A stretch of 64,000 nucleotides of DNA from Octopus sinensis. Lineage: Eukaryota. The stretch's first letter is position 1. Each line of letters opens with the position of its first letter. A program made the position numbers and the translations under genes. Under the pieces are notes generated by a model. The model was not told the origin of the DNA. It saw nothing but the letters and a program-made list of their open reading frames with translations, and ran no database searches. The stretch covers positions 69,130,001 to 69,194,000 of the forward strand of contig NC_043002.1 in the NCBI RefSeq assembly GCF_006345805.1, written 5' to 3'. Shown in pieces: positions 8,078 through 64,000 of this stretch.

Positions 8078-8104
8078 TTTATATATATATATATAATATA
8101 TATA

Positions 8105-8147
<43 letters not shown>

Positions 8148-8858
8148 TATATATGTATATGTATATATATGTATATGTATATGTATATATATGTATGTTA
8201 TATATATGTATATGTATATATGTATATGTATATATATGTATATGTATATATGGTATATGTATATGTATATATGTATATGTATATATATGTATATGTATAT
8301 ATGTATATGTATATATATGTATATGTATATATATGTATATGTATATATATATATATGTATATATATGTATATATATGTATATGTATATATATGTATATAT
8401 ATATATATGTATATGTATATATATGTATATGTATATATATGTATATGTATATATGTATATGTATATATATATGTATATATATATGTGTATATGTATATAT
8501 ATATATGTATATGTATATATATATGTATATGTATATATGTATATGTATATATATATGTATATGTATATATATATGTATATATATATATAATATATATATA
8601 TATATATGTATATATATATGTATATATATATATGTAATATATATATATAATGTATATATATATATATGTATGTATATATATATGTATGTATATATATATA
8701 TATATATGTGTATATATATATATATGTATGTATATTATATATATATGTATGTATATATATATATATGTGTATATGTATATATATATATATATGTGTGTAT
8801 ATATATATATATGTTGTAATATATATATATATATATGTGTATATATATATATATATTG

Positions 8859-8891
<33 letters not shown>

Positions 8892-10121
8892 GTGTATATG
8901 TATATATATATATATAGTGTATATGTATATATATATATATGTGTATATGTATATATATATATATGTGTATATGTATATATATATATATATGTGTATATGT
9001 ATATATATATATATATGTGTATATGTATATATATATATATGTGTATATGTATATATATATGTGTATGTGTATATGTATATATATATGTGTATATGTATAT
9101 ATTATATATATGTGTATATGTATATATATATATATGTGTATATGTATATATATATATGTGTATATGTATATATATATATATGTGTATATGTTATATATAT
9201 GTGTATATGTATATATATGTGTATATGTATATATATATATATGTGTATATGTATATATATATATATGTGTATATGTATATATATATATATGTGTATATGT
9301 GTATATATATATATGTGTATATGTATATATATATATATGTGTATATGTATATATATATATATGTGTATATGTATATATATATATATGTGTATATGTATAT
9401 ATATATATATGTGTATATTATATATATATATATGTGTATATGTATATATATATATATGTGTATATGTATATATATATATATATGTGTATATGTATATATA
9501 TATATGTGTATATGTATATATATATATATGTGTATATGTATATATATATATATGTGTATATGTATATATATATATATATGTGTATATGTATATATATATA
9601 TATGTGTATATGTATATATATATATATGTGTATATGTATATATATATATATGTGTATATGTATATATATATATATGTGTATATGTATATATATATATGTG
9701 TATATGTATATATATATATGTGTATATGTATATATATATATGTGTATATGTATATATATATATATGTGTATATGTATATATATATATATGTGTATATGTA
9801 TATATGTATATATATGTATATATGTATATATGTATATATGTATATATATGTATATATGTATATATATGTATATATGTATATATATGTATATATATATATG
9901 TATATATGTATATATGTATATATGTATATATGTATATATATATGTATATATGTATATATATGTATATATATATATATATGTATATATGTATATATATGTA
10001 TATATATGTATATATGTGTATATATGTATATATATGTATATATATGTATATATGTATATATATGTATATATATGTATATATGTATATATATGTATATATA
10101 TATATATAATGTATATATATG

Positions 10122-10152
<31 letters not shown>

Positions 10153-10424
10153 TGTATATATATATATATGTATATATATGTATATATGTATATATATGTA
10201 TATATGTATATATATGTATATATGTATATATGTATATATATATATATGTATATATGTGTATATATGTATATATATATATGTATATGTGTATATGTGTATA
10301 TATGTATATATATATATGTATATATGTATATGTATATATGTATATGTATATATGTATATATGTATATATATATATGTATATATATATATGTATATATGTA
10401 TATATATATATATATGTATATATG

Positions 10425-10475
<51 letters not shown>

Positions 10476-10594
10476 GTGTATATATATGTATATGTATATA
10501 TATATATGTGTATATATATGTATATATATATATTATATATGTATATGGTATAATATATATTATATGTATATGTATATATATATATATGTGTATA

Positions 10595-10659
<65 letters not shown>

Positions 10660-10887
10660 GTGTATATATATGTGTTATATATCTATATATATATGTATAT
10701 GTATATTATATGTTATATATATTATTATATATATATATATATGTATATGTATATATATATATATGGTATATATATGTATATATATATATGTATATGTATA
10801 TATATATATATGTGTATATATATGTATATATATATATATGTGTATATATATATGTATATGTATGTATATATATATATATATATGTAT
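8078..10887. repeat. ~2.8-kb compound (TA)n-derived microsatellite with TATG, TATATG and TATGTG higher-order blocks
   Basis: Read directly; for example ~20-24-bp (TA)n-TGTGTATATG units at about 8870-9790. Confidence 0.97.
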
Positions 10888-11148
10888 CTGGCCCTCGTGC
10901 CGGTGGCACATAAAAAGCACCATCCGTTCGTGGCCGTTTGCCAGCTCTGTCTGGCACCAGTGCGGGTGGCACGTAAAAAGCACCCACTACACTCACGGAG
11001 TGGTTGGCGTTAGGAAGGGCATCCAGCCGTAGAAACACTGCCAGATTTGACTGGGCCTGATGAAGCCTTCTGGCTTCACAGACCCCAGTAGAACCGTCCA
11101 ACCCATGCTAGCATGGAAAACGGACGCTAAATGATGATGATGATGATG

Positions 11149-11150
<2 letters not shown>
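10888..11150 (+). mobile_element. RTE-type LINE 3' UTR fragment with (ATG)n tail, young, inserted in the microsatellite
   Basis: ggtggcacgtaaaaagcacc repeat units and a ccaacccatgctagcatggaaaacggacg-(ATG)n end; CpGs retained. Confidence 0.85.
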
Positions 11151-11240
<90 letters not shown>

Positions 11241-11264
11241 GTATATATATATATATTATATATG

Positions 11265-11317
<53 letters not shown>

Positions 11318-11320
11318 GTG

Positions 11321-11406
<86 letters not shown>

Positions 11407-11715
11407 GTGTAAAAGTTTTTAATTCTCATCTCACTAAATTTATCCAGCTATGTGTATCTAGTACACTCTTCGCCTTGAATGTAATGATATATGTATAATA
11501 TATGGCGTGTACTGGTACACCGGCGATTATAATTAATTTTATTGTATCGCATTTATCTTTGTTTACATATTCTCTCGATAAATTTCTGACCGTTAGAGGA
11601 TATACCACAATCCCCTATTTTGTCGGGTTTGTTCGAGTCTGCGCAGTGTTTTGAATAGTTTAGAAAGAGCATTTCGATAGACGCACATGGATCTATTGGT
11701 ATGGTCTTTCCATCA

Positions 11716-11806
11716 TTAACAGGAATCTTACTGAAGAGCCAGCCTGAGTAAATAAATACTATTTTTATTACTGAATTTGGCGAAACTGCGGTATAAGAAA
11801 AGTTAA
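11716..11806 (+). ncRNA. Type I hammerhead ribozyme, copy 1 (predicted cleavage after GUA at 11793)
   Basis: Stem I TTAAC-aggaa-TCTTA / TAAGA-aaa-GTTAA; core CTGAAGA 11731-11737; stem II GCCAG...TTGGC; GAAA 11782-11785; stem III ACTGCGGT. Confidence 0.85.
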
Positions 11807-12118
11807 GTTTGTAAAAGTTTTTAATTCTCATCTCACTAAATTTATCCAGCTATTTGTATCTAGTACACTCTTCGCCTTGAATGTAATGATATATGTATAA
11901 TATATGGCGTGTACTGGTACACCGGCGATTATAATTAATTTTATTGTATCGCATTTATCTTTGTTTACATATTCTCTCGATAAATTTCTGACCGTTAGAC
12001 GATATACCACAATCCCCTATTTTGTCGGGTTTGTTCGGAGTCTGCGCAGTGTTTTGAATAGTTTAGAAAGAGCATTTCGATAGACGCACATGGATCTATT
12101 GGTATGGTCTTTCCATCA

Positions 12119-12209
12119 TTAACAGGAATCTTACTGAAGAGCCAGCCTGAGTAAATAAATACTATTTTTATTACTGAATTTGGCGAAACTGCGGTATAAG
12201 AAAAGTTAA
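12119..12209 (+). ncRNA. Type I hammerhead ribozyme, copy 2 (predicted cleavage after 12196)
   Basis: Same sequence as copy 1; core CTGAAGA 12134-12140. Confidence 0.85.
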
Positions 12210-12522
12210 GTTTGTAAAAGTTTTTAATTCTCATCTCACTAAATTTATCCAGCTATTGTGTATCTTGTACACTCTTCGCCTTGAATGTAATGATATATGT
12301 ATAATATATGGCGTGTACTGGTACACCGGCGATTATAATTAATTTTATTGTATCGCATTTATCTTTGTTTACATATTCTCTCGATAAATTTCTGACCGTT
12401 AGACGATATACCACAATCCCCTATTTTGTCGGGTTTGTTCGGAGTCTGCGCAGTGTTTTGAATAGTTTAGAAAGAGCATTTCGATAGACGCACATGGATC
12501 TATTGGTATGGTCTTTCCATCA

Positions 12523-12613
12523 TTAACAGGAATCTTACTGAAGAGCCAGCCTGAGTAAATAAATACTATTTTTATTACTGAATTTGGCGAAACTGCGGTA
12601 TAAGAAAAGTTAA
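12523..12613 (+). ncRNA. Type I hammerhead ribozyme, copy 3 (predicted cleavage after 12600)
   Basis: Same sequence as copy 1; core CTGAAGA 12538-12544. Confidence 0.85.
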
Positions 12614-12922
12614 GTTTGTAAAAGTTTTTAATTCTCATCTCACTAAATTTATCCAGCTATTGTGTATCTAGTACACTCTTCCCTTGAATGTAATGATATA
12701 TGTATAATATATGGCGTGTACTGGTACACCGGCGATTATATTAATTTTATTGTATCGCATTTATCTTTGTTTACATATTCTCTCGATAAATTTCTGACCG
12801 TTAGACGATATACCACATCCCCTATTTTGTCGGGTTTGTTCGGAGTCTGCGCAGTGTTTTGAATAGTTTAGAAAGAGCATTTCGATAGACGCACATGGAT
12901 CTATTGTATGGTCTTTCCATCA

Positions 12923-13010
12923 TTAACAGGAATCTTACTGAAGAGCAGCCTGAGTAAATAATACTATTTTTATTACTGAATTTGGCGAAACTGCGGTATA
13001 GAAAAGTTAA
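12923..13010 (+). ncRNA. Type I hammerhead ribozyme, copy 4 (predicted cleavage after 12998), with three 1-bp deletions
   Basis: Core intact; GCAG replaces GCCAG, one A is lost within stem II, and TAGA replaces TAAGA. These may be sequencing errors. Confidence 0.7.
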
Positions 13011-13172
13011 GTTTGTAAAAGTTTTTTATTCTCATCTCACTAAATTTATCCAGCTATTGTGTATCTAGTACACTCTTCGCCTTGATGTAATGATATATGT
13101 ATAATATATGGCGTGTACTGGTACACCGGCGATATAATTAATTTTATTGTATCGCATTTATCTTTGTTTACA

Positions 13173-13186
13173 TATATGTATATATG

Positions 13187-13261
<75 letters not shown>

Positions 13262-13272
13262 ATATGTATATA

Positions 13273-13303
<31 letters not shown>

Positions 13304-13470
13304 GTATATCTTATATATATATATGTAATCTATAATATATATGTAATAATATATATCTATATATGTATATATTAATAATATATATGTATATATATGTATA
13401 TAATATATAAGATATATGTATATATATATACTATATGTTATATATATATATATATTATTATGTATGTATA

Positions 13471-13520
<50 letters not shown>

Positions 13521-13559
13521 GTATATATAATATATATATATGTATATATATATATGTAT

Positions 13560-13595
<36 letters not shown>

Positions 13596-13685
13596 TATTG
13601 TATATATATATATATATATGTATATAATATATATATGTATATATATAATATATGTATATATATATAATATATATATGTATATATG

Positions 13686-13720
<35 letters not shown>

Positions 13721-13732
13721 ATATATGTATAT

Positions 13733-13766
<34 letters not shown>

Positions 13767-13779
13767 AGTGTATAATATA

Positions 13780-13810
<31 letters not shown>

Positions 13811-13811
13811 G

Positions 13812-13873
<62 letters not shown>
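13173..13873. repeat. (TA)n-derived compound microsatellite, right flank of the retrozyme array (left flank 11151-11408)
   Basis: Read directly. Confidence 0.95.
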
Positions 13874-14459: not shown

Positions 14460-15030
14460 TCATCATTATCACCATTTAATGTTCACTTTCCATGCTGGCA
14501 TGGGTTGGACGGTTTGACTGAGGTCTGGCTGCATCAGGCTCCAATTTGATCAGGCAGGGTTTCTACAGCTGGATGTCCATCCTTAAACCACTCTGAGAAT
14601 ATAGTGGGTGCTTATTATGTGCCACTGGCATGGGGTCCAGCCAGGCGGTACTAGCATCGACCACACTCAAATGGTGCCTTTTACATGCCACCAGCATGGG
14701 GGCCAGTTAGGCAGCACTGGCATTGGTCACAACTATGATTTCACTTGACTCAACAAGTCTTCTCAAGCTAGCATATTGCCTGATGATTGAAGGGTACTTT
14801 TAAACAGGCCGGTTATGCGACACTGGCATCAGCCATGGTTATGATTTCACTTGATTTGCCAGGTCTTCTCAATCACAACATATTTCCAAAGGTCTCGATC
14901 GCTTGTCATTGCCACTGTGAGGCCCAGCATTCAAAGTCGTGCTTTCCCACTTCATCCCATATCTTCCTGAGTCTACCACCTCCACAGGTTCCTTCCACTG
15001 TTAGGGTGTGACACCTCTTCACTCAGCTGT
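14460..15030 (-). mobile_element. RTE-type LINE 3' fragment (RT C-terminus plus 3' UTR)
   Basis: Minus strand encodes CHTLTVEGTCGGGRLRKIWDEV, followed by the same 3' UTR and (CAT)n tail. Confidence 0.8.
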
Positions 15031-18111: not shown

Positions 18112-18169
18112 ATGGGTGAGGCATCTGCAGGCAGTTGCAGTCCACAGTACTGTCAACTTCAGGTCACAG
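18112..18169 (+). CDS. Su(dx): NEDD4-family HECT E3 ligase (Su(dx)/ITCH/WWP1/WWP2 group), coding exon 1: MGEASAGSCSPQYCQLQVT-V
   Basis: Acceptor tttttcacAG ends 18082; in-frame TGA at 18097-18099 precedes ATG 18112; donor GTAAGA at 18170 (phase 1). QLQVTV matches the start of the ITCH C2 domain (SQLQITV). Confidence 0.85.
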
Positions 18170-20289
18170 GTAAGAGTCAACATCTAATTAGATATTAAGG
18201 AAATACATATGTGCATGTGTGTGTGTGTGTGTGTGTAGACACAGGTATAGATATTATGTCAACAATGGGTGATAGAATAGTTATGTAAAGAAATTTGCTT
18301 TGCAGCCACATGATTCTGGTTTGATTCTTTGTGTGGTACCTTGGAGAGGTAACTTGTGAGTGAAATTTTATAGACTAGGACAGTACAGAAAATTGTCATG
18401 AGTGCACGTGTGTATGTACTTGTGCAAACCCTCTCTCATGTTATATGCAGGTTAAACTTAAATATTTGATAATGATCATTAAGTACTAGAGTATGTAAGT
18501 ACAGGTGTCAAAATGATTGACTAAAGCCCTTGAAAATGGTACTACAGTATATGGTTGTAGTTCAGTGACTGAAACTCTTAAAAATATTTATTCAGCTGTT
18601 ACCCATTACTTAGTTTGCAATTTTAGTCTTCACAAGATATCTTGTGGTCAGGATTGAATGAAAATATTTAAAACTGTAAACACCAAGTTATTATTAATGT
18701 GCCATGACTGTTTTTTTTTTTTTTTTTGTAAAGTTCTGCTTTAGTTTATTCCTGTTATTTCTTACAGTCAAATTTGAAATGGTTATGATCCTTATTGTTG
18801 TTATTGGGATAAGTGGTTGAATTACTGAGAGAGAGAGAGAGAGAGCTGTTTTTATTTTTTTAATAACAGTGACCTTCAACTGATTTTAACTCGTTGCCCT
18901 CATGATGGCTCTAAAAGCATTCACCACTAAAGTGAACTACACAATACTATATTACAAGAAATTTGAAAGAGGCAATAATAAATCAGTCTTTCCTCATAAT
19001 GTTCTCACTATTAATCCCAACATCCCTACCATGTTTCAATGCACTGTTTGAGAATGACTGATTAATTGCTGTTTGCTTGACTTCACATCTCACTACCAAC
19101 CCCTCATATAATTCTTTCCACTTGTTCTCTTCCTGTTTCTTTCTCTTTAATTCTCTTATTCCTATTATGTCTTTTTGTGCTAGGCTTGTGGATTAGTAGA
19201 ATCATTAGAGCATTGGACAAACTGCTTGGCAATATTTGTTCTGGCACTCTGCATTCTGAGTGCAAGTGCAATCAATGTTACTGTTGTCTTTCATCCTTTA
19301 GGGGTGGGGATGGAGGGGGAGGCAATAGAATAAGTCCTTATCGAGAACTGGAGTGAATATAACCAACTGTTCCCCTTTTTCCAAGTTTGGGTCTTGTGCC
19401 TATGTTAAACAATTATGCCTTTTGTACTGCATAAATTGAAGGGTTTCTGTATAATTTGACCCTTTATTATTATATCTGTGAGAAATAGTTTCTTTTCAGT
19501 TTACTCATAATTATTTATTTTCAGATATAAGATAAAGTACTGATAATACAATGGTAATGAATCAATCAGATGTATTCTCACCCATTTTTCATGACAAATT
19601 GGTCATAGTCAAATGGAATTGTAGACAGTTATTGTTCTTATAATGTCCATGTTCAAGGAAGTTGTTTAAATATCATTTATTCCTTCTTACTTGATGTAAC
19701 AGTATATATTTCCTTGATTGCCCAAAGAAAAGACTAACGTATCCTTTTTATCAGAACAATACACTGCCAGAGATATGGTTTGAAACTGTTAAGTTTCTGA
19801 ACCATAATCAATTTATGCTTCAACAAGATTGCATTATTTGTTTAAAGAAAAATGCTTTTCAATCTGCTTACAGTTGGATACTTTTTCAAACAGTTAATTT
19901 TAGTGGTTGAAAGCTCTTACTGTTGGAAATAACAAGTCTATCATGTTGTGGTTCTGAAATTTATTTTCTCTCTAGCTTTTATGTATTCTGTTTTGTCTTC
20001 TTTACCTTCTGTCTGCATTGGAGCATTGGATCTCAAACAATACTTCCTCTAACTATTTGGAAAATTCTCACCCTATTAGTATCTGATACTGAGTTCATGC
20101 TCCACCCCCATCAATGCAAACTTAATATCTAGAGTACCTCTGCATCATCTTTTCTTCTGATAGAAATAACAACTAAATTCCTTGCTTGCAAAGAAGACAG
20201 GATGGTCATAGATGGAATATTGATTGAATTAAAGAAAATTTGGCATTGACCTGACTGATCAAAATACTAGCAGATCAACAAGGAACCTA

Positions 20290-21997: not shown

Positions 21998-22139
21998 TTA
22001 AATTCAAGATAAACAAATATGACATGAATCCGTCCTAGGTTATGGTCATTATTTCTGAACTATATGTCTGAGATATCAGTTTTGGCATTAGATGTAATAT
22101 TATTATATTTACGTAATTATTATTTTTTCTTTTCTTTAG

Positions 22140-22278
22140 TCCAATCAGCCAGGTTAACTGCAGTAGGTTTATTCAAACCTGATCCATATCTGGAGCTCAG
22201 TGTTGATAGCATGTCACCAAAAAAAACAGAAGTATGTCGAAAATCTACAAATCCAGAATGGAATGAACATTTCACTGT
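22140..22278 (+). CDS. Su(dx): HECT E3 ligase exon 2, C2 domain (VQSARLTAVGLFKPDPYLELSVDSMSPKKTEVCRKSTNPEWNEHFTV)
   Basis: tttctttAG acceptor and GTGAGT donor; 139 bp, phase 1 to 2; C2 motifs PDPY and NPEWNEHF. Confidence 0.95.
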
Positions 22279-22440
22279 GTGAGTTAATGTTTAAAGTATT
22301 TAAAATAATTTATATTTAAAGATCATTTTGGCTATACCCCTTTCTAAAATGATTCTATTTGTTAGAAATGTACCTTTTCTCTTTATATAATTTGTATAAT
22401 TGTGAAGTATATATTTGCTTCTTGTGTTTATATTTTTCAG

Positions 22441-22565
22441 GTTAGTGACACCTTATTCTAAGTTAGATTTCCGTGTCTTAAACCAGAACCACATCCGAGC
22501 TAATTCCTTATTAGGGGAAGTTACACTTGATTTGTACCCACTTTTGAAAGAATATCATGGAAAAT
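22441..22565 (+). CDS. Su(dx): HECT E3 ligase exon 3, C2 domain (LVTPYSKLDFRVLNQNHIRANSLLGEVTLDLYPLLKEYHGK)
   Basis: tttttcAG acceptor and GTAAGT donor; 125 bp, phase 2 to 1; aligns by eye to ITCH IVTPVSKLHFRVW...LLG...LD. Confidence 0.95.
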
Positions 22566-23787
22566 GTAAGTTGCTTAAAAATAGCTTTCCGTAGTTTTAA
22601 TATTTTTAAAACTCTGCTTAACACATTGTATATATTAGAATGGGTTATTAACTTTTTTTTTGTAGTGGTCTGCTTTTAAGTAGTTGTTATATTTAGCACT
22701 TGCCTAAGTGGGAAGTGAGATATCGTGACTAAACTAACTTAACATGGATGATAAATTATAAATTTTACTCTAAAAATGGATTGTATAAGCTTTTAACAGT
22801 GACATGATAAAATGAATAAAGATAAAAGTTGTAAATTTGCTTTATACATTGTAGGTTAATTACTTCCCTGTGCCTGATGAGATCTCATTTTATTTTAATA
22901 ACCATCACTGGTTTTATCATGTATAATATAATTACTACTATAGGTAGAATTTAGTATGTTAATTATGTTACTTCACTGCTCCCTAAAGCATAATGCCCCC
23001 ACCCCCCATGCGCAATGTTCCCTTGAAGGGGCAGTACTGTTGAGAAACTTTGTATTAGAGTAAATTTTTTTCTTATCTAACAAAATTTGTTAATATTAAC
23101 TTAACATCAGCTCAGACATGCCTAACTTCAATTAATAGTAACCATTTGTAAGTGTTGTGTAGTCAGCCACAAGAGTTGACTTGACAAAATGTCTGTCTGT
23201 CTTCTGAAGAGTTGAAAGTTTTTATTCATCACTACTGTTGCATTGCGTCTCTGAGCAAGATACTGAACATTTTTGGTATTAGTTTGTCTTAGGGGGAAAA
23301 AATTGACAATGTAGCATTAGTCACATTGACAATTAATGAATTGTTTATTAGAATACAATACCTACCCAGTCAAAATCTGCAGAGACTAATTTAGTTTTAA
23401 CCCCCTTGGTGCTTTTTATAGATAGTAAAATTGTAATAGAGAATTTCTGAATATCACAAAATCGTCTGTTGACTGACATCTACACAAAGACTGTTGATTC
23501 TGTCAATACACCAATGTGTCCATATTAACAGATTTCCTACTACACAACTTTTTCTCTATATTGAATTTCTGCTTATGGCCATTCTTACTTAATCTCCAGT
23601 GATGTACAAACAACACTAAATTTTTTATAAATGTCAGGATTTTTCTAGAAACTGGATTTTACTTATTTACTTGGGCATGTCTTTTGTCAATGCATCTTTG
23701 CAAATTATATTGTAAGCAGTTTTATTTATTTATTTTTTTTTTTTTGTTAACTGTAATGTCATTGATTTTTATCCTTGTTGTTTCTAG

Positions 23788-23922
23788 TTAATTCTCATTC
23801 AAAAAAGTTGGATTTGAAACACAATGGGAAAGGTAAAATTGGAGATTTGTCTATTGTGCTAAATGGAATGGATGTTAAAATGGAACATCTTCCTCCGAAG
23901 CGACACAGTGCAGCCATCAATG
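23788..23922 (+). CDS. Su(dx): HECT E3 ligase exon 4, end of C2 (FNSHSKKLDLKHNGKGKIGDLSIVLNGMDVKMEHLPPKRHSAAING)
   Basis: tttctAG acceptor and GTAAGT donor; 135 bp, phase 1 to 1; IGDLSIVLNG resembles ITCH IGDLSICLDG. Confidence 0.92.
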
Positions 23923-24430
23923 GTAAGTTGTTGTTGACTGTGCACCTGAATTTTATTTATTCCATCCTTTCATATTTTAAAGCTTCTTTTAATCAAAAAT
24001 GTTGGTATTAATTTTGGTTTATTTATTTTCATTTGGACTCACAAATAAAGATTAATTTTATTGAGTAGAAGCAGTGTAAGTTTGGCAACTGAACAAAAGT
24101 ATGAATGCTTATAGTAAAAAGGAATTTCAAGATCTTAAGTTATAAGAATTCATTTAGTGATATTAAAATTTTGATTAATCTTTTTAAAATAAATATATAA
24201 AGGAGTTTGTATTTGTTTGTAAGTTAGCAAGATACAAAGTTCAATTGATGAAGCTAAAAACTGTTATTTTGGGGGATTCAGTTTTAAAGACATCAAAAAT
24301 AACATTCAAGCATACATATGCATATACTTATTGAAATTTTGTGTATTCAACACACAAATACACACTCAAAAATATACATTTTTAACTGGTTTCAGTCATC
24401 AGGCTATGGTCATGCTGTGATACTATCACC

Positions 24431-28137: not shown

Positions 28138-28823
28138 TGGTGAAGCATGACCTTTGAATGTTGGACCTCACAGATGCAATGACAGGAGACTGAGACCTTT
28201 GGAAATATGCTGTGATTGAGAAGACCTGGCAATTAAAGTGAGATCGCAGCCATGACTGATGCCAGTGTTGCATCTCTGCTCCATTGATGTGGGAGGCAAT
28301 ATGATATGCTTGAGAAGACCTGTGGAGTCAAGTAAAACTAAAATTGTAGCAGTGGCCTATGCCTCCTGACTGGTTCCTGTTCCGGTGGTATGTAAAATGC
28401 ATCATCTGGATGTGGTTGATGCTAGTGTCCCCCGACTGGCTCCCATGCAGTAGCACATAAAAAGCACCATCTGAACATGGTCAATGCCAGTGTCACCTGA
28501 CTGGCTCCTGTGTCGGTAGCACATAAAAAGCACTATCCGAATGTGATCAATGCTGGGACCGTCTGACTGGCTCCTGTGCTGGTGGTATGTAAAAAGCACC
28601 ATCTGAACGAGGTCTATGCCAGTGTCCCCTGACTGGCTCCTGTGCTGGTGGCATGTAAAATGCACTCACTTTACTCTCAGAGTGGTTGGCGTTGGGAGGG
28701 GCATCCAGCTGTAGAAATGTTGCCAGATCAGATTGGAGGCTGGTGCAGCCACTGGCTCTCAAGACCTCAGTCAAACCATCCAACCCATGCCAGCATGGAA
28801 AATGAATGTTAAATGATGATGAT
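28136..28823 (+). mobile_element. RTE-type LINE 3' fragment; 3' UTR holds five ~66-bp tandem units (28367-28680)
   Basis: VVKHDL...LWKYAV RT end; units start at 28367, 28433, 28498, 28564 and 28630; (ATG)n tail. Confidence 0.85.
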
Positions 28824-29744: not shown

Positions 29745-30378
29745 AGAGAAATGTTGGACATAAGACGCATCAGATGTGGTGTGCAAGAGAAATGTTTGCG
29801 CTAGTATGGTCATGTACTATGGATTGATGAGGAGAGCTGTGTGAAGAAGTGCCACTCCTAAACAGTTGAAGGAATGGGATGAGGTGGTGAAGCATGACCT
29901 TCGAGTGTTGGGCCTCACAGAGGCAATGACAAAAGACTGAGGCTTCTGTAGATATGCTGTGACTGCGAAGACCTGGCAAATAAAGTGAGTTCACAGCTGT
30001 AACCTACACCAGTGTTGCATAACCAACCCCAGCCCACTCAAAAGTACCAACATGCTGTGCTTGAGAGGGCCTATTGAGTCAAGTACATCAAAATCAAATG
30101 GAAATTGTAGCTGTGATCCCGTGCTGGTGGCACGTAAAAAGCACCAACTGATTGTGGTTGTTGCCAGCCTCCTCTGGCTCCTGTGCCAGTGGCATGTAAA
30201 AGGCACTCACTACACTCTCGGAGTGGTTGGTTTTAGGAAGGGTATCCAGCTATAGAAACACTACCAGATCAGACTGGAGCTTGGTGCAGCCTCCTGGCTT
30301 TCCAGACCCCAGTCAAACTGTCCAGCCCATGCCAGCATGGAAAACGGACATTAAACGATGATGATGATTGTGATGATG
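29745..30378 (+). mobile_element. RTE-type LINE 3' fragment
   Basis: RCGVQE..L..YGHV and WDEVVKHDLRVLGL remnants, followed by the same 3' UTR and (ATG)n tail. Confidence 0.85.
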
Positions 30379-34231: not shown

Positions 34232-34698
34232 TCATCATCATCGTTTAACATTTGCTTTCCATGCTGGTATGTGTTGGACGGTTTGACTAGGGACTGGTGA
34301 GCCAGATGGCTGCACCAGGCTCCAATCTGATCTGGCTGAGTTTCTACAGCTAGATGCACTTCCTAACGCCAACCACTCTTAGAGTGTAGTGGGTGCTTTT
34401 ACGTGCCACTGGCACAAGGGCCAGCCAGGTGGTACTGGCAACTGCCACGCTCAAGTAGTGTTTTTATGTGTCATCTGCACAGGAGCCACTCCAGCGGCAC
34501 TAGCAATGCCCTCGCTTGAATGTTGTTTTTCACCAGTAAGGCGATGCTGGGTGCTTTTTAGGTGCCACCAGCATGGGGGCCAGTCAGCGGTCCTGGCAAC
34601 AATCATGCTCGTATGGTGCTCTTTGTGCTCCACTACCACAGATGCCAGTCATGCGGTGCTGTCATCGAATTTGATTTCGATTTCACATGCCTCAATAT

Positions 34699-36947: not shown

Positions 36948-39749
36948 GTAAGCAGTAGCTGTTGAACAAAATTTCTTCATCTTTATGTGATGCTCATTGT
37001 TTGTTAATGTGTCTTTTCAAATGACTGCTTGTTTAATTATTTTATAATCATTTAACTTTGCATGGTTGTTTTGATGTTGCCAGCTTTTTTATTTTCAATT
37101 AAAAATAGTGCTCTTGTTTGGTTGTTTGCAGAACATATGCACACACATACAGATCATTTTATGTCAATCTTATGTTTTGTATAGACATTGTTATGTTAAA
37201 TCCACTAGTTATGCTAAGTTTATGATTCTCTCTGATTTCTACATGTGTTGAAGAACTTCAGTTGCTCTAGGGTGGTGGAGTCAGTATGTAGAAAAATTTC
37301 ATTAGATCCTCTATACTTTCTAAATTGAGTACCTTGTATTTCTGAGTTCAAATCCTGCTGGGGCTCAATTTTGCCTGTTATCTTACTAGAGTAGAAAGTC
37401 AGATAAAATGAGTACTAGTAATATATGTGGGGATCAAGTCATGCTGCATATATCTTGTGTAAAATATGTCATATTCTAGATTGTTGGCTACATTTTAAAA
37501 TTTCCAATTCAGTTTATTTGAAATTGGTAATGGTTAAGTGTTTTTTCCCTCCCAACCACCTCTGATCATTACGTTATTAAATTTGCAGCAAATTAAGAAT
37601 GGATATATATATATATATATATTGTATGTTTCATAAACATTCTCTGTGTGAATTTGCCTTACCTTTCATTGTGATGGAACATGATAATAAATTATTGAAT
37701 TTAGTTGAAGTTATATCAATTTCTTTTTCTTTTTTCAGGTTTAGTTTATTTGATTTGTTGGGCATTTTAATTGTTCTGTGTTTATCATCCTTGTACAATG
37801 ATGTCTAAATAAATTATAAATATGTCTAGTTTGGATGTTAATGTTTTCTAACATGATTATTCTGTAGCTGATTCTTTTAACATTTATGCATTTCATAATG
37901 GTTTATTGCTGATAATTCACCAGATTAACATATTTGCTCTTTCCTAATGAAGTTTAAATGGATTTAACAACTTTATTTTACTTTTTGAAATTAGAAATTT
38001 TATACTGGATTTGAATGAACCAGAGCCATTACCATCAATTGTGGAGAGATTCTATTGTCTCTAATGTAAACCATCTGGTGTTTTTATGTGCAGATGTTTT
38101 TGGACTGATCAGGTGTTTTTATGTACCTGATCAGTCCAAAGTCAATCAATATTTATAATGATGGGCATTAAATTTGGTAATATTTAAAAACTTATTTTTA
38201 GTAACAGCTTAAAATATTTCTAATACCCATATTTACATGTGCACATACAAACCTGATTCTAGAAATCTTTAGAATTGCTTTTTAAAAATCTATTTTAAAG
38301 CAGTTTTAAAACTGCATTGTTAATATTTTGTTTCTCTTTAGAATATGAATATGTATGTGAGTGTGTGTATGCATGTATATATGTGTTTGTGTATCTGTAT
38401 ATAAAAATGTGAAATAGCTGTTATTTTGTTCCTATTTAGATTGTGCAAAACAAAACCACGAAACAGATATATTATTATTTTCCACCTTACAGCTTTCAGG
38501 GAATATTTTTATAACATTTGAAATATAGCTGCCAAATGTGTCTTTAAGCCACACTCTACTATGTTCAAGGACAGGAGATGGAGAAAAACAGAAAGTTAAA
38601 AGGGAGTGGTAGGAGTAAAAAGCATAAAAGTTAGAAAAGAGTTGTTGCATCAGTAACAGAAAAATTAGAAAATACATTTGTGCGGCATAAAGCTCTGTTT
38701 TTCTGCATTCTTCAGTCTCTCTTTAATATTTCTTTCTCCTTTTCTTGGTCTTTCTTTAGAATAGTAAAATAGATTCAGAGAAAGTGAGATAAAGGAAAAG
38801 AGGGGAATACTGGTGAATCATTAACATAAGCACTTTGTTGCAAAATTCTTCTTGAATGAACTCCCCAAACTCTACAGGCTAGAATAATGTTGATTATGCA
38901 CACTCTTTTAAGTGGCTGGTGAACAAGCAGAAACAAGGTCGGGTCAAAAGGTCTTGTCAAGGATATGACAGCCTCTCTGGGGCTGGTGCCACAATAACAT
39001 GTACCCAGTACACTCTTTACAGTGGTTGTTGTTAAGAAGGATATCGTGTTGCAGACAGCAAACCTAAAATGAAACCAGTGCAATACATGGTCCCCTGATC
39101 CATCTAAAAATGCAATGGTTCTGAATAAGAACTGACTTAAATCTTAATGACCCATTTACTGCATTCTAGCATGGTTGGCATTAGGAAGAACATCCAGCCA
39201 TAGAAACCATGCAAATACAGACTCTGGATCATGAAGTAGTTCTTGGATCCATCGGACCCTGTCAAACTGTCCAACCCATGCCAGCATGGAATATGGGTGT
39301 TAACTGTTGAGGATGATAATGATGATATATATGCACATTTTTATATGTACATGTATGCCTGTATATGTATTTATGTGTGTGTTACTATTTCATTTCTGAA
39401 AGCAACAGCTTCAAATGAATGCACTCTACTGTACCTCCAATCACACACACACACACGCACACACTTATACAAATATATGCATTAATATTTATATATATAT
39501 ATTTATGTGTGTGTACGTATGTATGTATATATGTATGTATATATGCATGTATATCATCATCATCATTTAACGTCCATGTTCCATGCTAACATGGGTAGGA
39601 CGGTACCACAAAAGCTGGCCAGGCTGAAGCCTGCACCAGACTTTTGTGACTGTTTTGGCAGGATTTTTACAGCTGGATGCTCTTCCTAATACCATATATA
39701 TTATTTGGTCATGCTGGAGCACTGCCTTTCAGTGTGTTTGATTTTCTTT

Positions 39750-40494
39750 TCTGTACTATTTTTGGTGATGTAGTGAGTTGGACAGAGTTGCTATTCTTTG
39801 TACCAGTTGCTGTGATGTGGATATCTCAGATAAAAATTTGTCCAGACACTCTTTGTCGACTTCACCATCTACATCACTTAAATCCCTGAGGTTGTTTGGT
39901 AGAATGTTGAACAGTTGTGGACCCTTGAAACCCAGGCTGTTACAGTACTGGATCCTTATTCTAAAGGAAGAAAACAGGTTTTTGGTATTATGCAGTGCTA
40001 TTGGTTTAGCTCTCAATTCCTAAGTTGAGAGCTAGATCTATATGTATCTCACTGCATGCCTTTCACACCTTCTCTCTAGGAAATAGAGATTCAATTCCTT
40101 TAGCCACTCTCAGTCACTCATTTGTTTCACCAAGTCAGTCTTCTTTGTATAGTGGCGCTGGATTGCCTCAAGTTCTGGCACCAGTTTGATATCTTCTGGT
40201 GACCACAGTTTGGAGCAGTAATCCAGATGACTGAGAATTAAAGTTCTTCATAAGAGTAACATGGTATCCTTTTTCCTGGTGTCTGAATGATCTCAGAATC
40301 ATCCAGCTACTCCTCTGCACAATGTTGCCATCTTGTGTAATATGCCCATTGAATGTGGCATCATTACTCATGTAGATTCGCAGGTCATGCACTGACTCTG
40401 ACATTGCACTACCGTCTGGTCCTGTATATTCTGATTGTAGTCTGTTTGTGGGCCAATTGTGGAGTGTTTGAAACTTCTCAACACTGAACTGCAT
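39750..40494 (-). mobile_element. CR1/L2-type LINE 3' fragment (RT C-terminal region), decayed
   Basis: Minus-strand peptides MQF..EKFQ.L..., VHDL.IYMSNDATF and NSLGFKGPQLFNILP..LRDL...LDKFL resemble CR1-group ORF2 ends. Confidence 0.75.
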
Positions 40495-40616
40495 GTTATT
40501 TTCATGTCCATTTGTATATATGCATATCTATATATATATCTGTATGTGTGTGTGATCATCATTTAGTATCCGTTTTTCATGATGGCATGGTTTGAATAGA
40601 GCTGGTAAGGCCAGGG

Positions 40617-46689: not shown

Positions 46690-47100
46690 TATCATCATCA
46701 ACATAATTTGGCATCCATTCTCCATGCTTGCATGAGTTGGACGGGACTGCACCAAATTCCAATTTGATTTGGCAGTGTTTCTACAGCTGAATGCCCTTCC
46801 TAATGTCAACCACTCCAAGAGTGTAATGGGTGCTTTTATATGTCAGTTGCATGGCACCAATATCTTCCACGACTAGATTTCACTTGGCTTGATAGATCTT
46901 CCTTCTCAAGCACAGCATATTGCCAAAAGTCTTGGCCATTTGTCCATGCCTCTGTGAGGCCCTGCACTCAAAAGGTACTTTTTATGTACCACCAGCATGG
47001 TTGCTAGTTTCACGATACCAGCATTGGTCACATTGCTTCTGCGAGGCTCAATGCTCAAAAGGTGGGTTTTATGTTTCACGGGTTTATATGTCAAGTGGTA
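46690..47100 (-). mobile_element. RTE-type LINE 3' UTR fragment, older
   Basis: catcatc tail, then ccatgcttgcatgagttggacgg and gtttctacagctgaatgcccttcctaatg motifs shared with the other copies. Confidence 0.7.
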
Positions 47101-52505: not shown

Positions 52506-53476
52506 ATGTCTGGAGTTGTCTCTTCTTTTCGATGAAAAAAGAAAAGATGAAAATAACATTAAGTATTTACTAATATTGTCTTTTTATTTCTTTGCTAGTT
52601 AATTATTTTCAATTATTTAATACTGCCTAAATTAAATAAAACACTATCTTCACTTGATATACTGTGTATGAAAAGAAAATGGAATACTTAGGACTGAGCT
52701 ACCTTTGATCATAAGTTTGCTCAGTAAAAGCTGACCTGGGATTAAACAGCAGTTTATATGCATACACTCAGTTATAGAATTCTCCATGATATGTCAGTAT
52801 TAAAAATAGGAATGGGGGAAAAATTGTGCTAATGGAAAGAGGAATGATATATGTTTAGCTTTATTTCAAATATTTTCCTTTTTTAATATATCCAAGTCTA
52901 CATTATCCATTGTGACCATCCTTTTCTAAAATGGTTGGGTATAATTTGGGGGAGATTTTGTCGTTATTACTAGCAGCACATGTGACTGTGTTGAGGTTCT
53001 CTTATTAATTAGTTTGTGTAAAAATTTAATTTAAAAATGGTTGACATACTTTTTTCATGAATAATAAAATTACTATTAAAGAAATAATAAAAATGTTGAA
53101 ATGACTGAAAGAGATGTTAATTTTTGGTTGAAAATTTGTGAGCGATTATTTTATAACTGACACAGAGTTTTATCACGTGTCTGAAATGTATCACAGTAGA
53201 GTAGGTAAATAGATTTGGTGCTAGAATGTGGATTTAACTGAAAATCTGAGGCTAAGAACCAGAAAGTGAATTGGTCACAATAAAAATGTGACTCATTTCT
53301 CTCATCTGTTTTATGAATTTTGTTTTCCTCTCAAGTGGAAAAGATAAAATGAAAAAAAGCATGAACCAAGCAAACAAAGCATGTATTGTGGAATGTATCT
53401 CATGTGTAAAACAGAATTACTTTATCATAATGTTTGTTCTTTTGTTGTTAGTATCATTTCACTCGATCTATTGTAG

Positions 53477-53849
53477 ATTCATCCACACCGTCTGGCAGTA
53501 GTAGCGCTGGAGCATCAACATCTAGTGGACGAGGTGCTGAAGGAGGGCACTCACCAAAAGGCATTCAGCTTCAGAACGGTGTGGCTCCAAGTCCAGTGTC
53601 TCCGCTTGCATCGAGTTCATCTCATATGACTAGCGGTGCAACAGCTGGTGCCGTTGGTGGATCCACTGGTGGCGCCTCTGCAGGAGTTGCAGCTGTTGCA
53701 GTACCAGCCCATGTCACATCTGACGGAGCTTGTGGAACTGTCCCAAATTATGCTTCTCAGCAAGCCTCATCTCAAACTCCTCCTACTCAAGCACAGGTTC
53801 AGGCACAAGCACAACAACTGCAGCAGCCCCAGGATCCTTTACCAATTGG
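53477..53849 (+). CDS. Su(dx): HECT E3 ligase exon 6, Ser/Gly/Ala/Gln-rich linker ending QDPLPIG just before WW1
   Basis: ttgtAG acceptor, GTAATT donor; 373 bp open, phase 1 to 2; ends with the DPLPxG lead-in typical of WW domains. Confidence 0.9.
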
Positions 53850-53851
53850 GT

Positions 53852-54048
53852 AATTATCCTATATTTTTAATTATACCATATTTTTTAATTATTCTATATT
53901 TTTTAATTATGCTATATTTTTTAATTATCCTATATTTTTTAATTATCCTATATTTTTTAATTGTCCTATATTTTTAGATTATCCTATATTTTTTAATTAT
54001 GCTATATTTTTTAATTATACTCTATTTTTTAATTATACTCTATTTTTT
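53852..54048 (+). repeat. 18-bp AT-rich minisatellite, about 11 units, beginning at the exon 6 donor
   Basis: Unit AATTATCCTATATTTTTT with variants. Confidence 0.9.
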
Positions 54049-55614
54049 AAAAATAATTTTCTCTTATTTTATCTGAAGTTATGTATATCAAGATGCTCCA
54101 TATCAATGTGCCACTCATGCATATAAATGTGTGTATCCATGTTTTTGTATGCATAAATAATATATGAATAAAGGAAGTATGTTGTATATACACAGACATA
54201 TACACAAACACTTATGTATACAACATTGTAAATGCACATTTGTATTTTGTATGTAATCACGCATATATAATGTCTCGTACATTACTATTGTGTTTATCAC
54301 GTAAATAAAAGCCGAAAAGCATAAATTATTCAAGGCCCTCAGATTTCATGTATAACATTTTTTTCAAGTTTAAAAACTGTTACCCACAAAACTCAAGGTT
54401 ACGGTAATTGCTTGGCCATTTAGATCCAAAAATAATACAATTATATCTCTCCATATAATCTGTTGGTTGGTGACAAGAAGGGCATCAGTCTTAATGTAGT
54501 CTCATGTGACCCATACAAGCATAGAGAAGTAGACGACAAAACAATGATGGTGATGATTACATTTTGTTCACTCACCTCTTAATTCATTTATTACATGCAA
54601 TGTAGCACACGTACATACATGCATATTTTCTCTCTGTAATTGTACTTAATAGAAGAAATTTAATTTCTGATTTTTATGGTGCTTACATTTAGTTCAGTTC
54701 AAAGCTGAGTTTATGACCTGTTTTATTAATCACTTCATATATTAGTATAAACCTTGAACTTGGAAAGGCAGTGGTTATTGTGCTTATTCACATAAATAAA
54801 AGCCTAAAGAAAAGCTTTTTACTGAATTATATACTGACCTCCATGCATTAAATTAGCATTTTTATATTGAAATGGAAATTGTCACCTTGAGCAAGAGTCT
54901 TCTATTGTAGCCTTAGGTTGATCAACAGCTTGTCAGTAAATTTAGTTGATGGAAATGGTACAAAATCCATCATGCCTGTGTATTTGTATACACACACGCA
55001 TTTATATATGTGTATATGTGAGCTGAAGAGTAGTTTTCTCCATTTTGCATCTGTATGTGAATATACAATTGTATTATATAATGCTGAATGTGTGTATATG
55101 CAGATGCATCTATGCATGTAATATGTGTATGTACATGTGTGTTGAAGTTAATGATGCTGCATGGAGGAAATTATGAAACGGCTGTAATCATATGGGGATA
55201 ATAAGTCTGTATTTGCCTCTCACACCTGATTCTGTGTGGTTGGCGTTAGGAATGGCATCCAGCTGTAGAAACCATACCGAATGAGACTGGAGTCAAACCA
55301 TCCAACCTATGCCAGCAGGGACAACGAATATTAAATGATGGTGATGATGATAATTTATATATATGTCTATAGGATATCCCAGAAACAGCTGTAAGACTTT
55401 GAATTTTTTCCAATGATAATAATGTATATGACTTGAGATGTTTGCTTGCCTTAATGTTTATTGTCCCCTTTAACAATTATATATCTGCTATATTGGAAAT
55501 GTACAATGGCTCCATAACTGCCATCTTGGCTATAACCTTGGAGCCCTAGTAATCCGTTACAGAACTTACCTAATGTACCTAGTCGTTTGGATCACCTGTG
55601 AACTAAACCCCCAT

Positions 55615-56172: not shown

Positions 56173-56610
<438 letters not shown>

Positions 56611-59248: not shown

Positions 59249-59475
59249 ATGGGAACGTCGAGTGGACAGCCGTAACCGAGTATATTATGTTGACCACAAC
59301 ACTCGCACGACAACATGGCAGAAACCTAGCATGGATATGGTTCTGAACTGGCAGCAATGGCAACAGTGGCGAAACAACAGAAGCATGGAACACCTACAAC
59401 AGCGGTTTCTTTATCCACAGAATCAAATGCTAGCAACTGAAGCAGATACACAGGATGCATTGCCTCAGGGATGGG
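59249..59475 (+). CDS. Su(dx): HECT E3 ligase exon 8, WW2 plus WW2-WW3 linker ([26 protein letters not shown]...QRFLYPQ...DALPQGW)
   Basis: ttaaAG acceptor; GTCTGT donor at 59476 joins G|AG (Glu) to the next exon; 227 bp, phase 2 to 1. Confidence 0.95.
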
Positions 59476-60671: not shown

Positions 60672-60767
<96 letters not shown>

Positions 60768-61322: not shown

Positions 61323-61496
<174 letters not shown>

Positions 61497-62042: not shown

Positions 62043-63211
62043 CATGGTTTGATCAATAAGTGGCTGGACTGTTGCCATAGTAACGAAGCTAAAACATGCA
62101 GAGGGAAGCTGCTTGGCTTCACTCTGCACAGATTGATCTTGAACTCTGTTGTGCATGTGCACTAAGTCTTAACGTTCTAGCTCACTTCTGCTGTTTACAG
62201 CAGTGCCTGGAAGGAACGTGTGTAGCGTGTGATTGTTGCATTGATCATGACAGAGAGAGTTGAGCAGAAAATCTGCATTAAATTTTGCCAAAAGCTTGGT
62301 GATATCTACTCAGAGACCTACGCAAAGTTGCAGAAAGTGTATGAGCTGCACAGAAGTGTACGAGTGGTTCAAATGTTTCCAAAATGGCTGAAAAAAATGT
62401 TGATAGTGACAAACGTTGTGGGAGACCCGCAAGCAGCAGAACTGAAAAAAGCATTGCAGATGTGCAATCAACTGTGAGGGGAAATCGTTGAATCACCATC
62501 CATGAGTTATCAGCTATGGTTTAGTTCAGTCCATTGTCACTGAACATTTGGGTATGAGATGTGTGTCTGCCAAGTTTGTGCTAAAACTGCTTTTAACTGA
62601 CCAAAAATATAGTCAGGTTTCAGTTGCATAAGATCTCCTTGATTGTGTCAAGAATGATGTAAACTGTCATAACAGGCGATGGATCGTGGGTTTACTGTTA
62701 TGATCCCGAAACAAAGGCTCAGTCTTCACAGTGGAAAACCCCAAACCCTCCGAGACTGAAGCAATGTAAAGACACTGTTGACCATTTTCTTTGACTACAA
62801 GGGGATTGTTCATCATGAGTATACTCCACCTTGTCAGACCAGTAAATTTGGAGTACTACCTTGACGTTTTGCGGCATTTGTGGGATGCTATTCATTGGAA
62901 AAGTCCGTAATTGCATGCGTCCGATGAGTGGCATTTGCACCATGACAACACACCTACTCATTCAGCACAGGTTGTGCAACAGTTTTTGTCTAGGCACAGC
63001 ATTCCTCAGGTCTGAGAGCCACCATATTCCCCAGATCTCACTCCTTGCAACTTTTTCCTCTTTCCAAAAATCAAATTCTGCTTGAAACAGCACTGGATTA
63101 AGTGTGTAGCTTCTGAAAGGGACTACTTTGAAGGAGATTAAATGCCAAATTGGTACGTGTTGTTGTTTTGTTTTTATAGCACCAGTCTGGATACTTTATG
63201 ATCAAACCTAG
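62043..63211 (+). mobile_element. Decayed full-length mariner (DD34D-type) transposon
   Basis: TA-flanked degenerate TIRs (catggtttgatcaataag / ctttatgatcaaacctag); transposase remnants EQKICIKFCQKLG, ITGDGSWVYCYDPETKAQSSQWK, HLHHDNTPTH, PPYSPDL, with stops and frameshifts. Confidence 0.92.
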
Positions 63212-63330: not shown

Positions 63331-63484
63331 TCCTAAGGGTCCTTTTGGAGTTCCAATACAATACGAGAGGAGTTTCCGTTGGAAATTGGGTCAGTTCCGT
63401 TACTTATGCCACTCCAATGCACTTCAAGGTCACGTGAAAATCACTGTATCCAGAGATAATCTGTTTGAAGATTCATTTACTCAA
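63331..63484 (+). CDS. Su(dx): HECT E3 ligase exon 11, pre-HECT and HECT start ([51 protein letters not shown]); gene continues beyond the window
   Basis: gttttcAG acceptor, GTAAGT donor; 154 bp, phase 2 to 0. [19 protein letters not shown] is characteristic of Su(dx)/WWP1/WWP2/ITCH rather than NEDD4 or SMURF. Confidence 0.97.
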
Positions 63485-64000
63485 GTAAGTGTGACATAGC
63501 TGATGGAATCTTTAGCAGACCTCCCTATTCATAAAGGTTTCCGCACCTAAGCAGATGTAACATAACTAATTTAAAATTTCAAGACTGTTTGACTCATCTG
63601 TTGTGATTTTACCTCAGTTCTACATTTCAATCTGTAAAGTCGCATGGTCTAGTGGTTAGGTTGTTGCACTCATGATTGTGAGATCATGGTTTCAATTTCT
63701 GAACCAGGTGCTACATTTTGTTCTTGAGCTGATCACTTCATCTCATGTTGCTTTGTGATCACTTCAACACCTGACATGTAGCACACCATACACCTGCTCA
63801 AGTAATTTTGATTTGATGGAATGGGTGAGCTTATATACAGCACATAACATTTGGTCATTATAAACAAATCATTTGTGCTGCTTGTCCAGCAAGAAATTGC
63901 AGAACCAGCTTTCTCAGACTACCATCACACATTTTAACCTGATTGCTCTTTAATCATTATTAGGTGCTCTATTCCTTCAAATGTATACACACCCATAGGC

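Follow-up and report, generated by a model that had tools for sequence, protein, structure and literature searches.

The stretch analysed here comprises 64,000 nucleotides of contig NC_043002.1 of Octopus sinensis (the window). Between positions 11408 and 13175 it contains a single tandem array of a non-coding 404-bp unit, located in a long (TA)n/(TATG)n microsatellite tract and upstream of the coding exons of an E3 ubiquitin ligase gene. One hammerhead ribozyme motif is found per unit, on the + strand only, and three of the four motifs are intact. The array is probably a retrozyme-type insertion, non-autonomous and of the non-long-terminal-repeat (non-LTR) kind, with a type I hammerhead whose helix II is unusually long. 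Tandem Repeats Finder (TRF) gives a period of 404 and 4.4 copies on the + strand, with 98% matches and 1% indels; the units are arranged head-to-tail over about 1.8 kb. The unit has 34% GC, below 50%, which says little as the whole window has 33% GC.

If the array is cut at each of the four GUA sites proposed, the resulting pieces measure 386, 403, 404, 398 and 177 nt and align cleanly. All copies are on the + strand. Copy 1 (11408-11793, 386 nt; alignment and blastn) is truncated by 16-17 nt at its 5' end and finishes at a GUA cleavage site. Copies 2 (11794-12196, 403 nt) and 3 (12197-12600, 404 nt), defined by alignment and descriptor, run from cleavage site to cleavage site and are the RNAs predicted to be excised. 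Copy 4 (12601-12998, 398 nt; alignment) has six 1-nt deletions as compared to the consensus, and its 3' hammerhead is damaged. Copy 5 (12999-13175; sequence and alignment) is partial, with 177 nt ending in ...TTTGTTTACATAT followed by (TA)n. The array thus starts 16-17 nt past one cleavage site and ends 177 nt past another; its ends are not ribozyme ends, as expected if a multimeric or circular template had been copied from an arbitrary start. About five positions differ among copies 1-3. Copies 4 and 5 are set apart from these by one substitution and nine 1-nt deletions. The locus has private variants, for example G at 11468 and T at 12266. The deletion pattern in copies 4 and 5 is more suggestive of errors in a long-read consensus than of true mutations. 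Because the right-hand microsatellite has 6% indels, assembly errors are a real possibility at this end of the array. If the deletions are consensus errors, hammerhead 4 may be intact in the animal.

The motif is described for hammerhead 3 (12523-12613, +), which is identified by descriptor, Rfam alignment and energetics, with cleavage predicted after A17 at 12600. The distal part of helix I pairs UUAAC (12523-27) with GUUAA (12609-13) and is separated by an internal loop (5' strand AGGAA, 3' strand AAA) from the proximal part, in which UCUUA (12533-37) pairs with UAAGA (12601-05). The core is formed by CUGAAGA (12538-44) and GAA (12589-91). Helix II pairs GCCAG (12545-49) with UUGGC (12584-88) in 5 bp, one of them G.U, and encloses 34 nt comprising an internal loop plus hairpin. 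Helix III consists of A-C[UGCG]G-U (12592-99), with 2 bp closed by a UGCG tetraloop. All invariant positions are present (C3 U4 G5 A6 N7 G8 A9, G10.1-C11.1, G12 A13 A14, A15.1-U16.1, and A as H17). Helix I is open while helices II and III are closed, which gives the type I topology, and by its core and three-helix layout the locus would accordingly be classed as a type I hammerhead on sequence grounds. Hammerheads 1 (11716-11806, +, cleavage predicted after 11793) and 2 (12119-12209, +, after 12196) are found by the same descriptor; the sequence of hammerhead 1 is identical to that of hammerhead 3, and within the motif the three intact copies do not differ from one another. Hammerhead 4 (12923-13010, +, GUA site after 12998), located by alignment and a relaxed descriptor, is defective as assembled. 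Its core is kept, helix II is changed from GCCAG to GCAG, the hairpin extending helix II has one deletion, and the 3' strand of helix I is changed from UAAGA to UAGA. This reduces helix II to G-C and C-G followed by an A.G mismatch and leaves 3 pairs in proximal helix I.

These data bear out in part what the original prediction had said of the locus. A unit of about 404 bp in about 4.4 direct head-to-tail copies is what TRF finds at 11408-13175, GUA sites are present after 11793, 12196, 12600 and 12998, no ORF (open reading frame) runs through the unit, and the layout proposed for a non-LTR retrozyme, a tandem array of a few-hundred-bp monomer with one type I hammerhead, is the one observed (unit of 404, one polarity, no ORF). 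The further claim of a complete type I hammerhead in each full copy stands for the sites after 11793, 12196 and 12600; it does not for 12998, where 1-nt deletions take the motif outside our descriptor.

The descriptor, which we built ourselves, requires the core and minimum lengths of 4 bp for helix I, 3 bp for helix II and 2 bp for helix III. It matches three times in both strands of the window (128 kb), always in the array, and relaxing it to a 1-bp helix III, as in minimal Penelope-type hammerheads, gave no further match in the window. In dinucleotide-preserving shuffles the number of matches per window is 0.04 under the lax setting and 0.01 under the strict one, and shuffled monomers contain the motif at a frequency of 3.5e-4 (lax) or 1e-4 (strict). 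The per-monomer chance is the relevant figure, because the three copies are one evolutionary observation. The array and the motif are real and non-random.

For calibration we used four cloned retrozymes whose self-cleavage has been proven: Amil224 from coral, Mg353 from mussel, and Ax353 and Ax330 from axolotl (Suppl. Table 2, PMC7229834). The descriptor recovers three of their four hammerheads and misses that of Ax353, which has U.U at the base of helix II. The native hammerhead fold is calculated to lie 4.0 kcal/mol above the predicted minimum free energy (MFE) structure here and 3.1-7.4 kcal/mol above it in the validated four. The self-duplex of helix III, which represents the double-hammerhead mode, is predicted at -11.7 kcal/mol (8 bp, two G.U) as compared to -6.0 to -14.8 kcal/mol. 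The helix III, the GUA triplet and the modelled folding energetics of the ribozyme are in the range of validated retrozymes. By blastn the monomer has no similarity to the coral, mussel and axolotl elements (best E = 0.4, with the mussel), which fits the species-specific retrozyme sequences reported in PMC7229834.

The unit itself shows no coding capacity. Its longest ORFs, of 79-92 aa, are on the minus strand, and no frame is open across the whole unit. Comparison of the unit ORFs with Pfam gave no match, and the 79-aa ORF has no homologue in a collection of 5.8 billion proteins. The units are uniform, with no arrangement of terminal repeats around an internal region and no LTR, primer-binding site (PBS) or polypurine tract (PPT). 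No tRNA-like segment was found in the unit, and a resemblance to the A-box and B-box of an RNA polymerase III (Pol III) promoter was unconvincing when inspected by eye and was rejected. Two TTTTT runs are located on the + strand of each unit (12223-12227 and 12573-12577 in copy 3), and these argue against Pol III read-through of multimers. An AAUAAA hexamer lies inside the helix II hairpin of each unit (12557-12562 in copy 3); it is probably due to chance, with about 0.35 expected per unit at 34% GC.

The (TA)n/(TATG)n tract that surrounds the array extends over 8080-10887, 11149-11406 and 13172-13873. The left flank (11149-11406; TRF and sequence) is (TA)n/(TATG)n and shares TGTA with the unit at the junction, and the right flank (13172-13873; TRF and sequence) is a similar (TA)n microsatellite sharing ATAT with the unit. 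Both junctions therefore show 4 nt of microhomology between unit and microsatellite. As the insertion target is a microsatellite, a target-site duplication is unreadable. The segment 8080-10887 is a 2.8-kb imperfect (TA)n/(TATG)n repeat of about 1400 dinucleotide units (80% matches), which gives spurious long ORFs and microRNA-like (miRNA-like) Rfam matches. A second insertion, an element of about 240 bp resembling a short interspersed nuclear element (SINE) with an (ATG)n tail, is found within the same tract at 10888-11148, which marks the tract as a repeated insertion target. The SINE-like element has at least 10 copies in the window with 72-99% identity, others being located at 474-618, 14487-14706, 28436-28802, 30120-30349, 34256-34633, 39172-39291, 46767-46837 and 55236-55290. 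A 66-bp tandem repeat makes up the 5' part of this element (28365-28665), and a literature search for the SINE-like sequence found nothing. Elsewhere in the window, ORFs at 39759-40527 (-) and 62226-63082 look by eye like the C-terminal part of a long interspersed nuclear element (LINE) reverse transcriptase and a mariner-type helix-turn-helix; Pfam gave no match at E<=1, and we make no claim for them.

Taken as a retrozyme-type insertion, the array agrees with every structural feature of that class that we tested, with two exceptions: the Rfam score, which is below the gathering score, and the circular fold, whose z of -0.45 speaks clearly neither for nor against. A sequence of events can be proposed. 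The unit would have been inserted as a multimer into the (TA)n microsatellite, and its + strand would be transcribed as a multimer, with read-through or RNA polymerase II (Pol II) transcription likelier than Pol III in view of the two TTTTT runs per unit. Each hammerhead would cut after GUA. Cleavage would probably be best as a double hammerhead between neighbouring units, because helix III has only 2 bp and a tetraloop and its sequence, ACUGCGGU, is quasi-palindromic. Linear monomers of 403-404 nt would be released, with 5'-OH and 2',3'-cyclic phosphate ends brought together by helix I, and a host RNA ligase of the RtcB type would circularise them. A Penelope-like reverse transcriptase/endonuclease acting in trans could then copy the circle by rolling-circle reverse transcription and join the multimeric cDNA at a nick in the microsatellite. 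What we infer from the sequence is that the unit is transcribed, cleaved and circularised, which reverse transcriptase is involved, and that the locus is a source copy and not a silent daughter insertion. For mobilisation by a Penelope-like enzyme, which would be in keeping with the original prediction, the only local hint is the insertion into (TA)n with 4-nt junction microhomologies. We are far less sure that the locus actively gives rise to a 404-nt circular RNA than we are of the class of the element.

Several results weigh against a retrozyme-type insertion. The original prediction had proposed a search with the Rfam hammerhead models. At the gathering score no family matches anywhere in the window, and at E<=10 the region 11300-13300 gives only spurious miRNA-like matches in the (TA)n flanks. 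When the 111-nt stretch 12515-12625 is taken alone, where the filters are laxer, the best of the 4227 families is RF00163 (Hammerhead_1). The alignment runs end to end over the 45-position model (1-45), in the same register as the manual parse and with all core positions and three helices, at a score of 16.6 bits (E = 0.11), below the gathering score of 34. The low score is due to a 38-nt insertion in the loop of helix II, where the model expects about 8 nt. The Rfam model agrees on the architecture and does not certify membership. The enlarged helix II (an insertion of 34-38 nt) is itself unlike all four validated retrozymes, and proximal helix I has 5 bp as compared to 6 bp in these. The predicted structures also count against this assignment. 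In the MFE structure of a 113-nt region UACUG pairs with CGGUA, hiding part of the core; an MFE structure without the hammerhead is, however, normal, as the validated native folds also lie above their MFE. The circular monomer has a predicted MFE of -80.1 kcal/mol with 59% of its bases paired and, by its z of -0.45, is no stabler than shuffles. The circular folds of the validated retrozymes have z of -0.87 (mussel), -1.82, -2.67 and -2.98, with 66-71% paired, so that the predicted circular fold is weaker here than in all four, the mussel element being nearest. Hammerhead 4 as assembled fails the descriptor on helices I and II. The monomer has no copy outside the array when compared by blastn with the 64-kb window, which leaves a single locus, and four unit ORFs, looked up by exact match in public assemblies, yielded no relatives. 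Among the ORFs of the window none with a reverse transcriptase or a Penelope-like GIY-YIG domain was seen in the array, beside it or elsewhere. A degenerate hammerhead pattern gave 41 matches in metagenome contigs, none similar to the monomer, which we attribute to chance, and 0 in viral contigs.

A serious alternative is that the array is a genuine retrozyme-derived insertion but a silent daughter copy, a fossil that is not transcribed or whose RNA does not circularise. We hold this to be a substantial possibility, if short of an even chance. It would account for the damaged hammerhead, the weakly structured monomer and the absence of promoter evidence, and in Xenopus most copies are regarded as offspring that do not transpose (Li, Clavereau & Pollet, bioRxiv 2026). 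The state of the copies speaks against it. They are 98-99.5% identical, which points to a young insertion, three hammerheads are intact, and the damage in copies 4 and 5 consists almost entirely of 1-nt deletions that may be assembly error.

The array could also be an ordinary AT-rich minisatellite or satellite that arose in the microsatellite by local duplication (slippage or unequal exchange) and carried along a hammerhead-like motif formed by chance; it would then neither act as a ribozyme nor give circular RNA. In favour of this, the hammerhead consensus is short, the Rfam score is sub-threshold, and the copies stem from one unit, which reduces the three motifs to one observation. The searches for relatives were negative, the predicted fold does not surpass that of shuffles, and many tandem repeats are in effect tested when a multi-gigabase genome is scanned. 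We nevertheless consider this origin unlikely. The per-monomer chance is only 1e-4 to 3.5e-4, and this figure leaves out the second segment of helix I, the canonical G10.1-C11.1 pair and the quasi-palindromic helix III; the unit size, the single polarity and the design of helix III are as in validated retrozymes.

The least probable of the explanations, which we would give little credence, is that a pseudo-LTR fragment of an autonomous Penelope-like element, hammerhead included, became tandemised, in which case the array would not be a non-autonomous family in its own right. Partial tandem insertions, hammerheads within the pseudo-LTRs and a preference for microsatellites are known from Penelope-like elements (PMC8557442, PMC11167929), and Xenopus retrozymes are sister to Penelope-like pseudo-LTRs (Li, Clavereau & Pollet, bioRxiv 2026). 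Against this explanation, the array has no reverse transcriptase or GIY-YIG ORF in or beside it, consists of 4.4 uniform 404-bp units without an internal coding part instead of a pLTR-ORF-pLTR arrangement, and has a hammerhead of canonical size, not of the minimal type typical of these elements (PMC7229834). As defined by an ORF for reverse transcriptase and GIY-YIG endonuclease flanked by pseudo-LTRs, the array is not an autonomous Penelope-like element.

The gene downstream of the array encodes a HECT E3 ubiquitin ligase similar to WWP1/Su(dx)/ITCH and is on the same (+) strand. The exon with the start codon (~18113-18170, +) is preceded by an AG acceptor, which implies a non-coding first exon further upstream. 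A C2 exon follows at 22115-22279 (+; Pfam C2, 4.8e-8), and four WW domains are encoded by exons at ~56467-56559, 59250-59474, 60681-60767 and 61371-61496 (+; Pfam WW, 1e-10 to 1e-13). The HECT domain starts at 63332-63496 (+), and further exons are located at 22406-22591, ~23766-24008 and 53452-53850 (+). Right after the last of these, which encodes a Ser/Ala/Gln-rich linker, an 18-bp tandem repeat (53851-54050; 11 copies, 91% matches) is found at the presumed splice donor. The best named relatives of the ligase are molluscan (Lottia 70%, Tegillarca 63%, Mya 56%). This similarity points to a mollusc, and the AT-rich sequence, with its many SINE-like and (TA)n repeats, makes the cephalopod host of the original prediction plausible. 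The array is located 4.9 kb upstream of the ATG exon in sense orientation, and lies either in an intron of the 5' untranslated region (5'-UTR) or upstream of the gene. In the most far-reaching interpretation, which we regard as doubtful, the locus would be the founding locus of an undescribed cephalopod or molluscan family in which loop 2 is replaced by the internal loop and a hairpin of about 25 nt, with the internal loop providing the contact between loop 1 and loop 2. This family would be currently active and produce abundant 404-nt circular RNAs, and the array, in sense orientation in the 5' region of the WWP1-like gene and possibly in a 5'-UTR intron, could cut the nascent transcript.

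If confirmed, a retrozyme-type insertion at this locus would extend the known animal retrozymes by one lineage and by a structural variant with an enlarged helix II, and would offer a ready-made self-processing scaffold for a 404-nt circular RNA from a mollusc. The locus is also a clean case of a multimeric insertion in (TA)n with microhomologies at the junctions, which bears on how Penelope-like enzymes might integrate rolling-circle cDNA. Full-text literature searches found no description of the motif sequence, nor of retrozymes or hammerheads in cephalopods. With a cephalopod as host the array would be new for its lineage. The class as such has already been described in many animal phyla, molluscs included; no new question is opened, and a specialist would not be surprised.

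Knowledge of hammerhead satellites goes back to 1987, and that of the animal retrozyme model, molluscs included, to 2020. Metazoan non-LTR retrozymes are tandem repeats of 150-450 bp with a type I hammerhead, of low GC and without LTR, PBS or PPT; they give rise to RNAs of 170-400 nt, in linear as well as circular form, with a stable self-paired fold, and Penelope-like elements co-occur with them (PMC7229834). They are reported 'from molluscs to arthropods', with the mussel as worked example, and their sequences are species-specific (PMC7229834). Unit lengths range from 51 to 972 bp, and three quarters of the families have at most 7 repeats per locus; in Xenopus the elements are sister to the pseudo-LTRs of Penelope-like elements, and most copies are scattered monomers or short arrays, taken as non-transposing offspring (Li, Clavereau & Pollet, bioRxiv 2026). 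Penelope-like elements show an insertion bias towards microsatellites, (TA)n included (Craig et al. 2021, PMC8557442), and the repeat annotation of Octopus vulgaris lists 30 recently active Penelope families (PMC13282606).

Mg353 of Mytilus galloprovincialis shares much with the octopus array. Its host is a mollusc, its tandem non-coding unit is 350-390 bp (404 here) and AT-rich (37% GC as compared to 34%), and each of its units has a single type I hammerhead, confined to one strand. In both elements helix III has 2 bp and a tetraloop and can be extended to an 8-bp intermolecular helix (ACGCGCGU in the mussel, ACUGCGGU here), and the excess of predicted circular structure is weak (z of -0.87 and -0.45). 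The differences are in helix II, with 4 bp and a 5-nt loop in the mussel and 5 bp with an internal loop and hairpin, 34 nt in all, in the octopus unit; in the cleavage triplet, GUC in the mussel and GUA here; and in proximal helix I, with 6 and 5 bp, respectively. For the mussel element self-cleavage and abundant circular RNA in vivo have been shown; for the octopus unit both are predicted. The amphibian satellite 2 and the axolotl elements Ax330 and Ax353 likewise have tandem units of 330-350 bp with a type I hammerhead whose weak helix III needs dimeric action, and Ax353 has the GUA triplet and the helix III of 2 bp plus tetraloop seen here. The axolotl retrozymes differ in their vertebrate host, 51-58% GC, structured circular RNA (z -1.8 to -2.7), short helix II loop and copy numbers of tens of thousands. 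The hammerheads that Penelope-like elements have in their pseudo-LTRs (Cervera & de la Pena 2014; Frangieh et al. 2024) resemble the array in their type I topology, tandem or partial-tandem layout, microsatellite targets and presumed use of the same reverse transcriptase. They belong to elements of 3-4 kb with reverse transcriptase and GIY-YIG and are usually minimal, with a very short helix III and reduced helices, whereas the octopus array is without an ORF and its motif is canonical in size, with an enlarged helix II.

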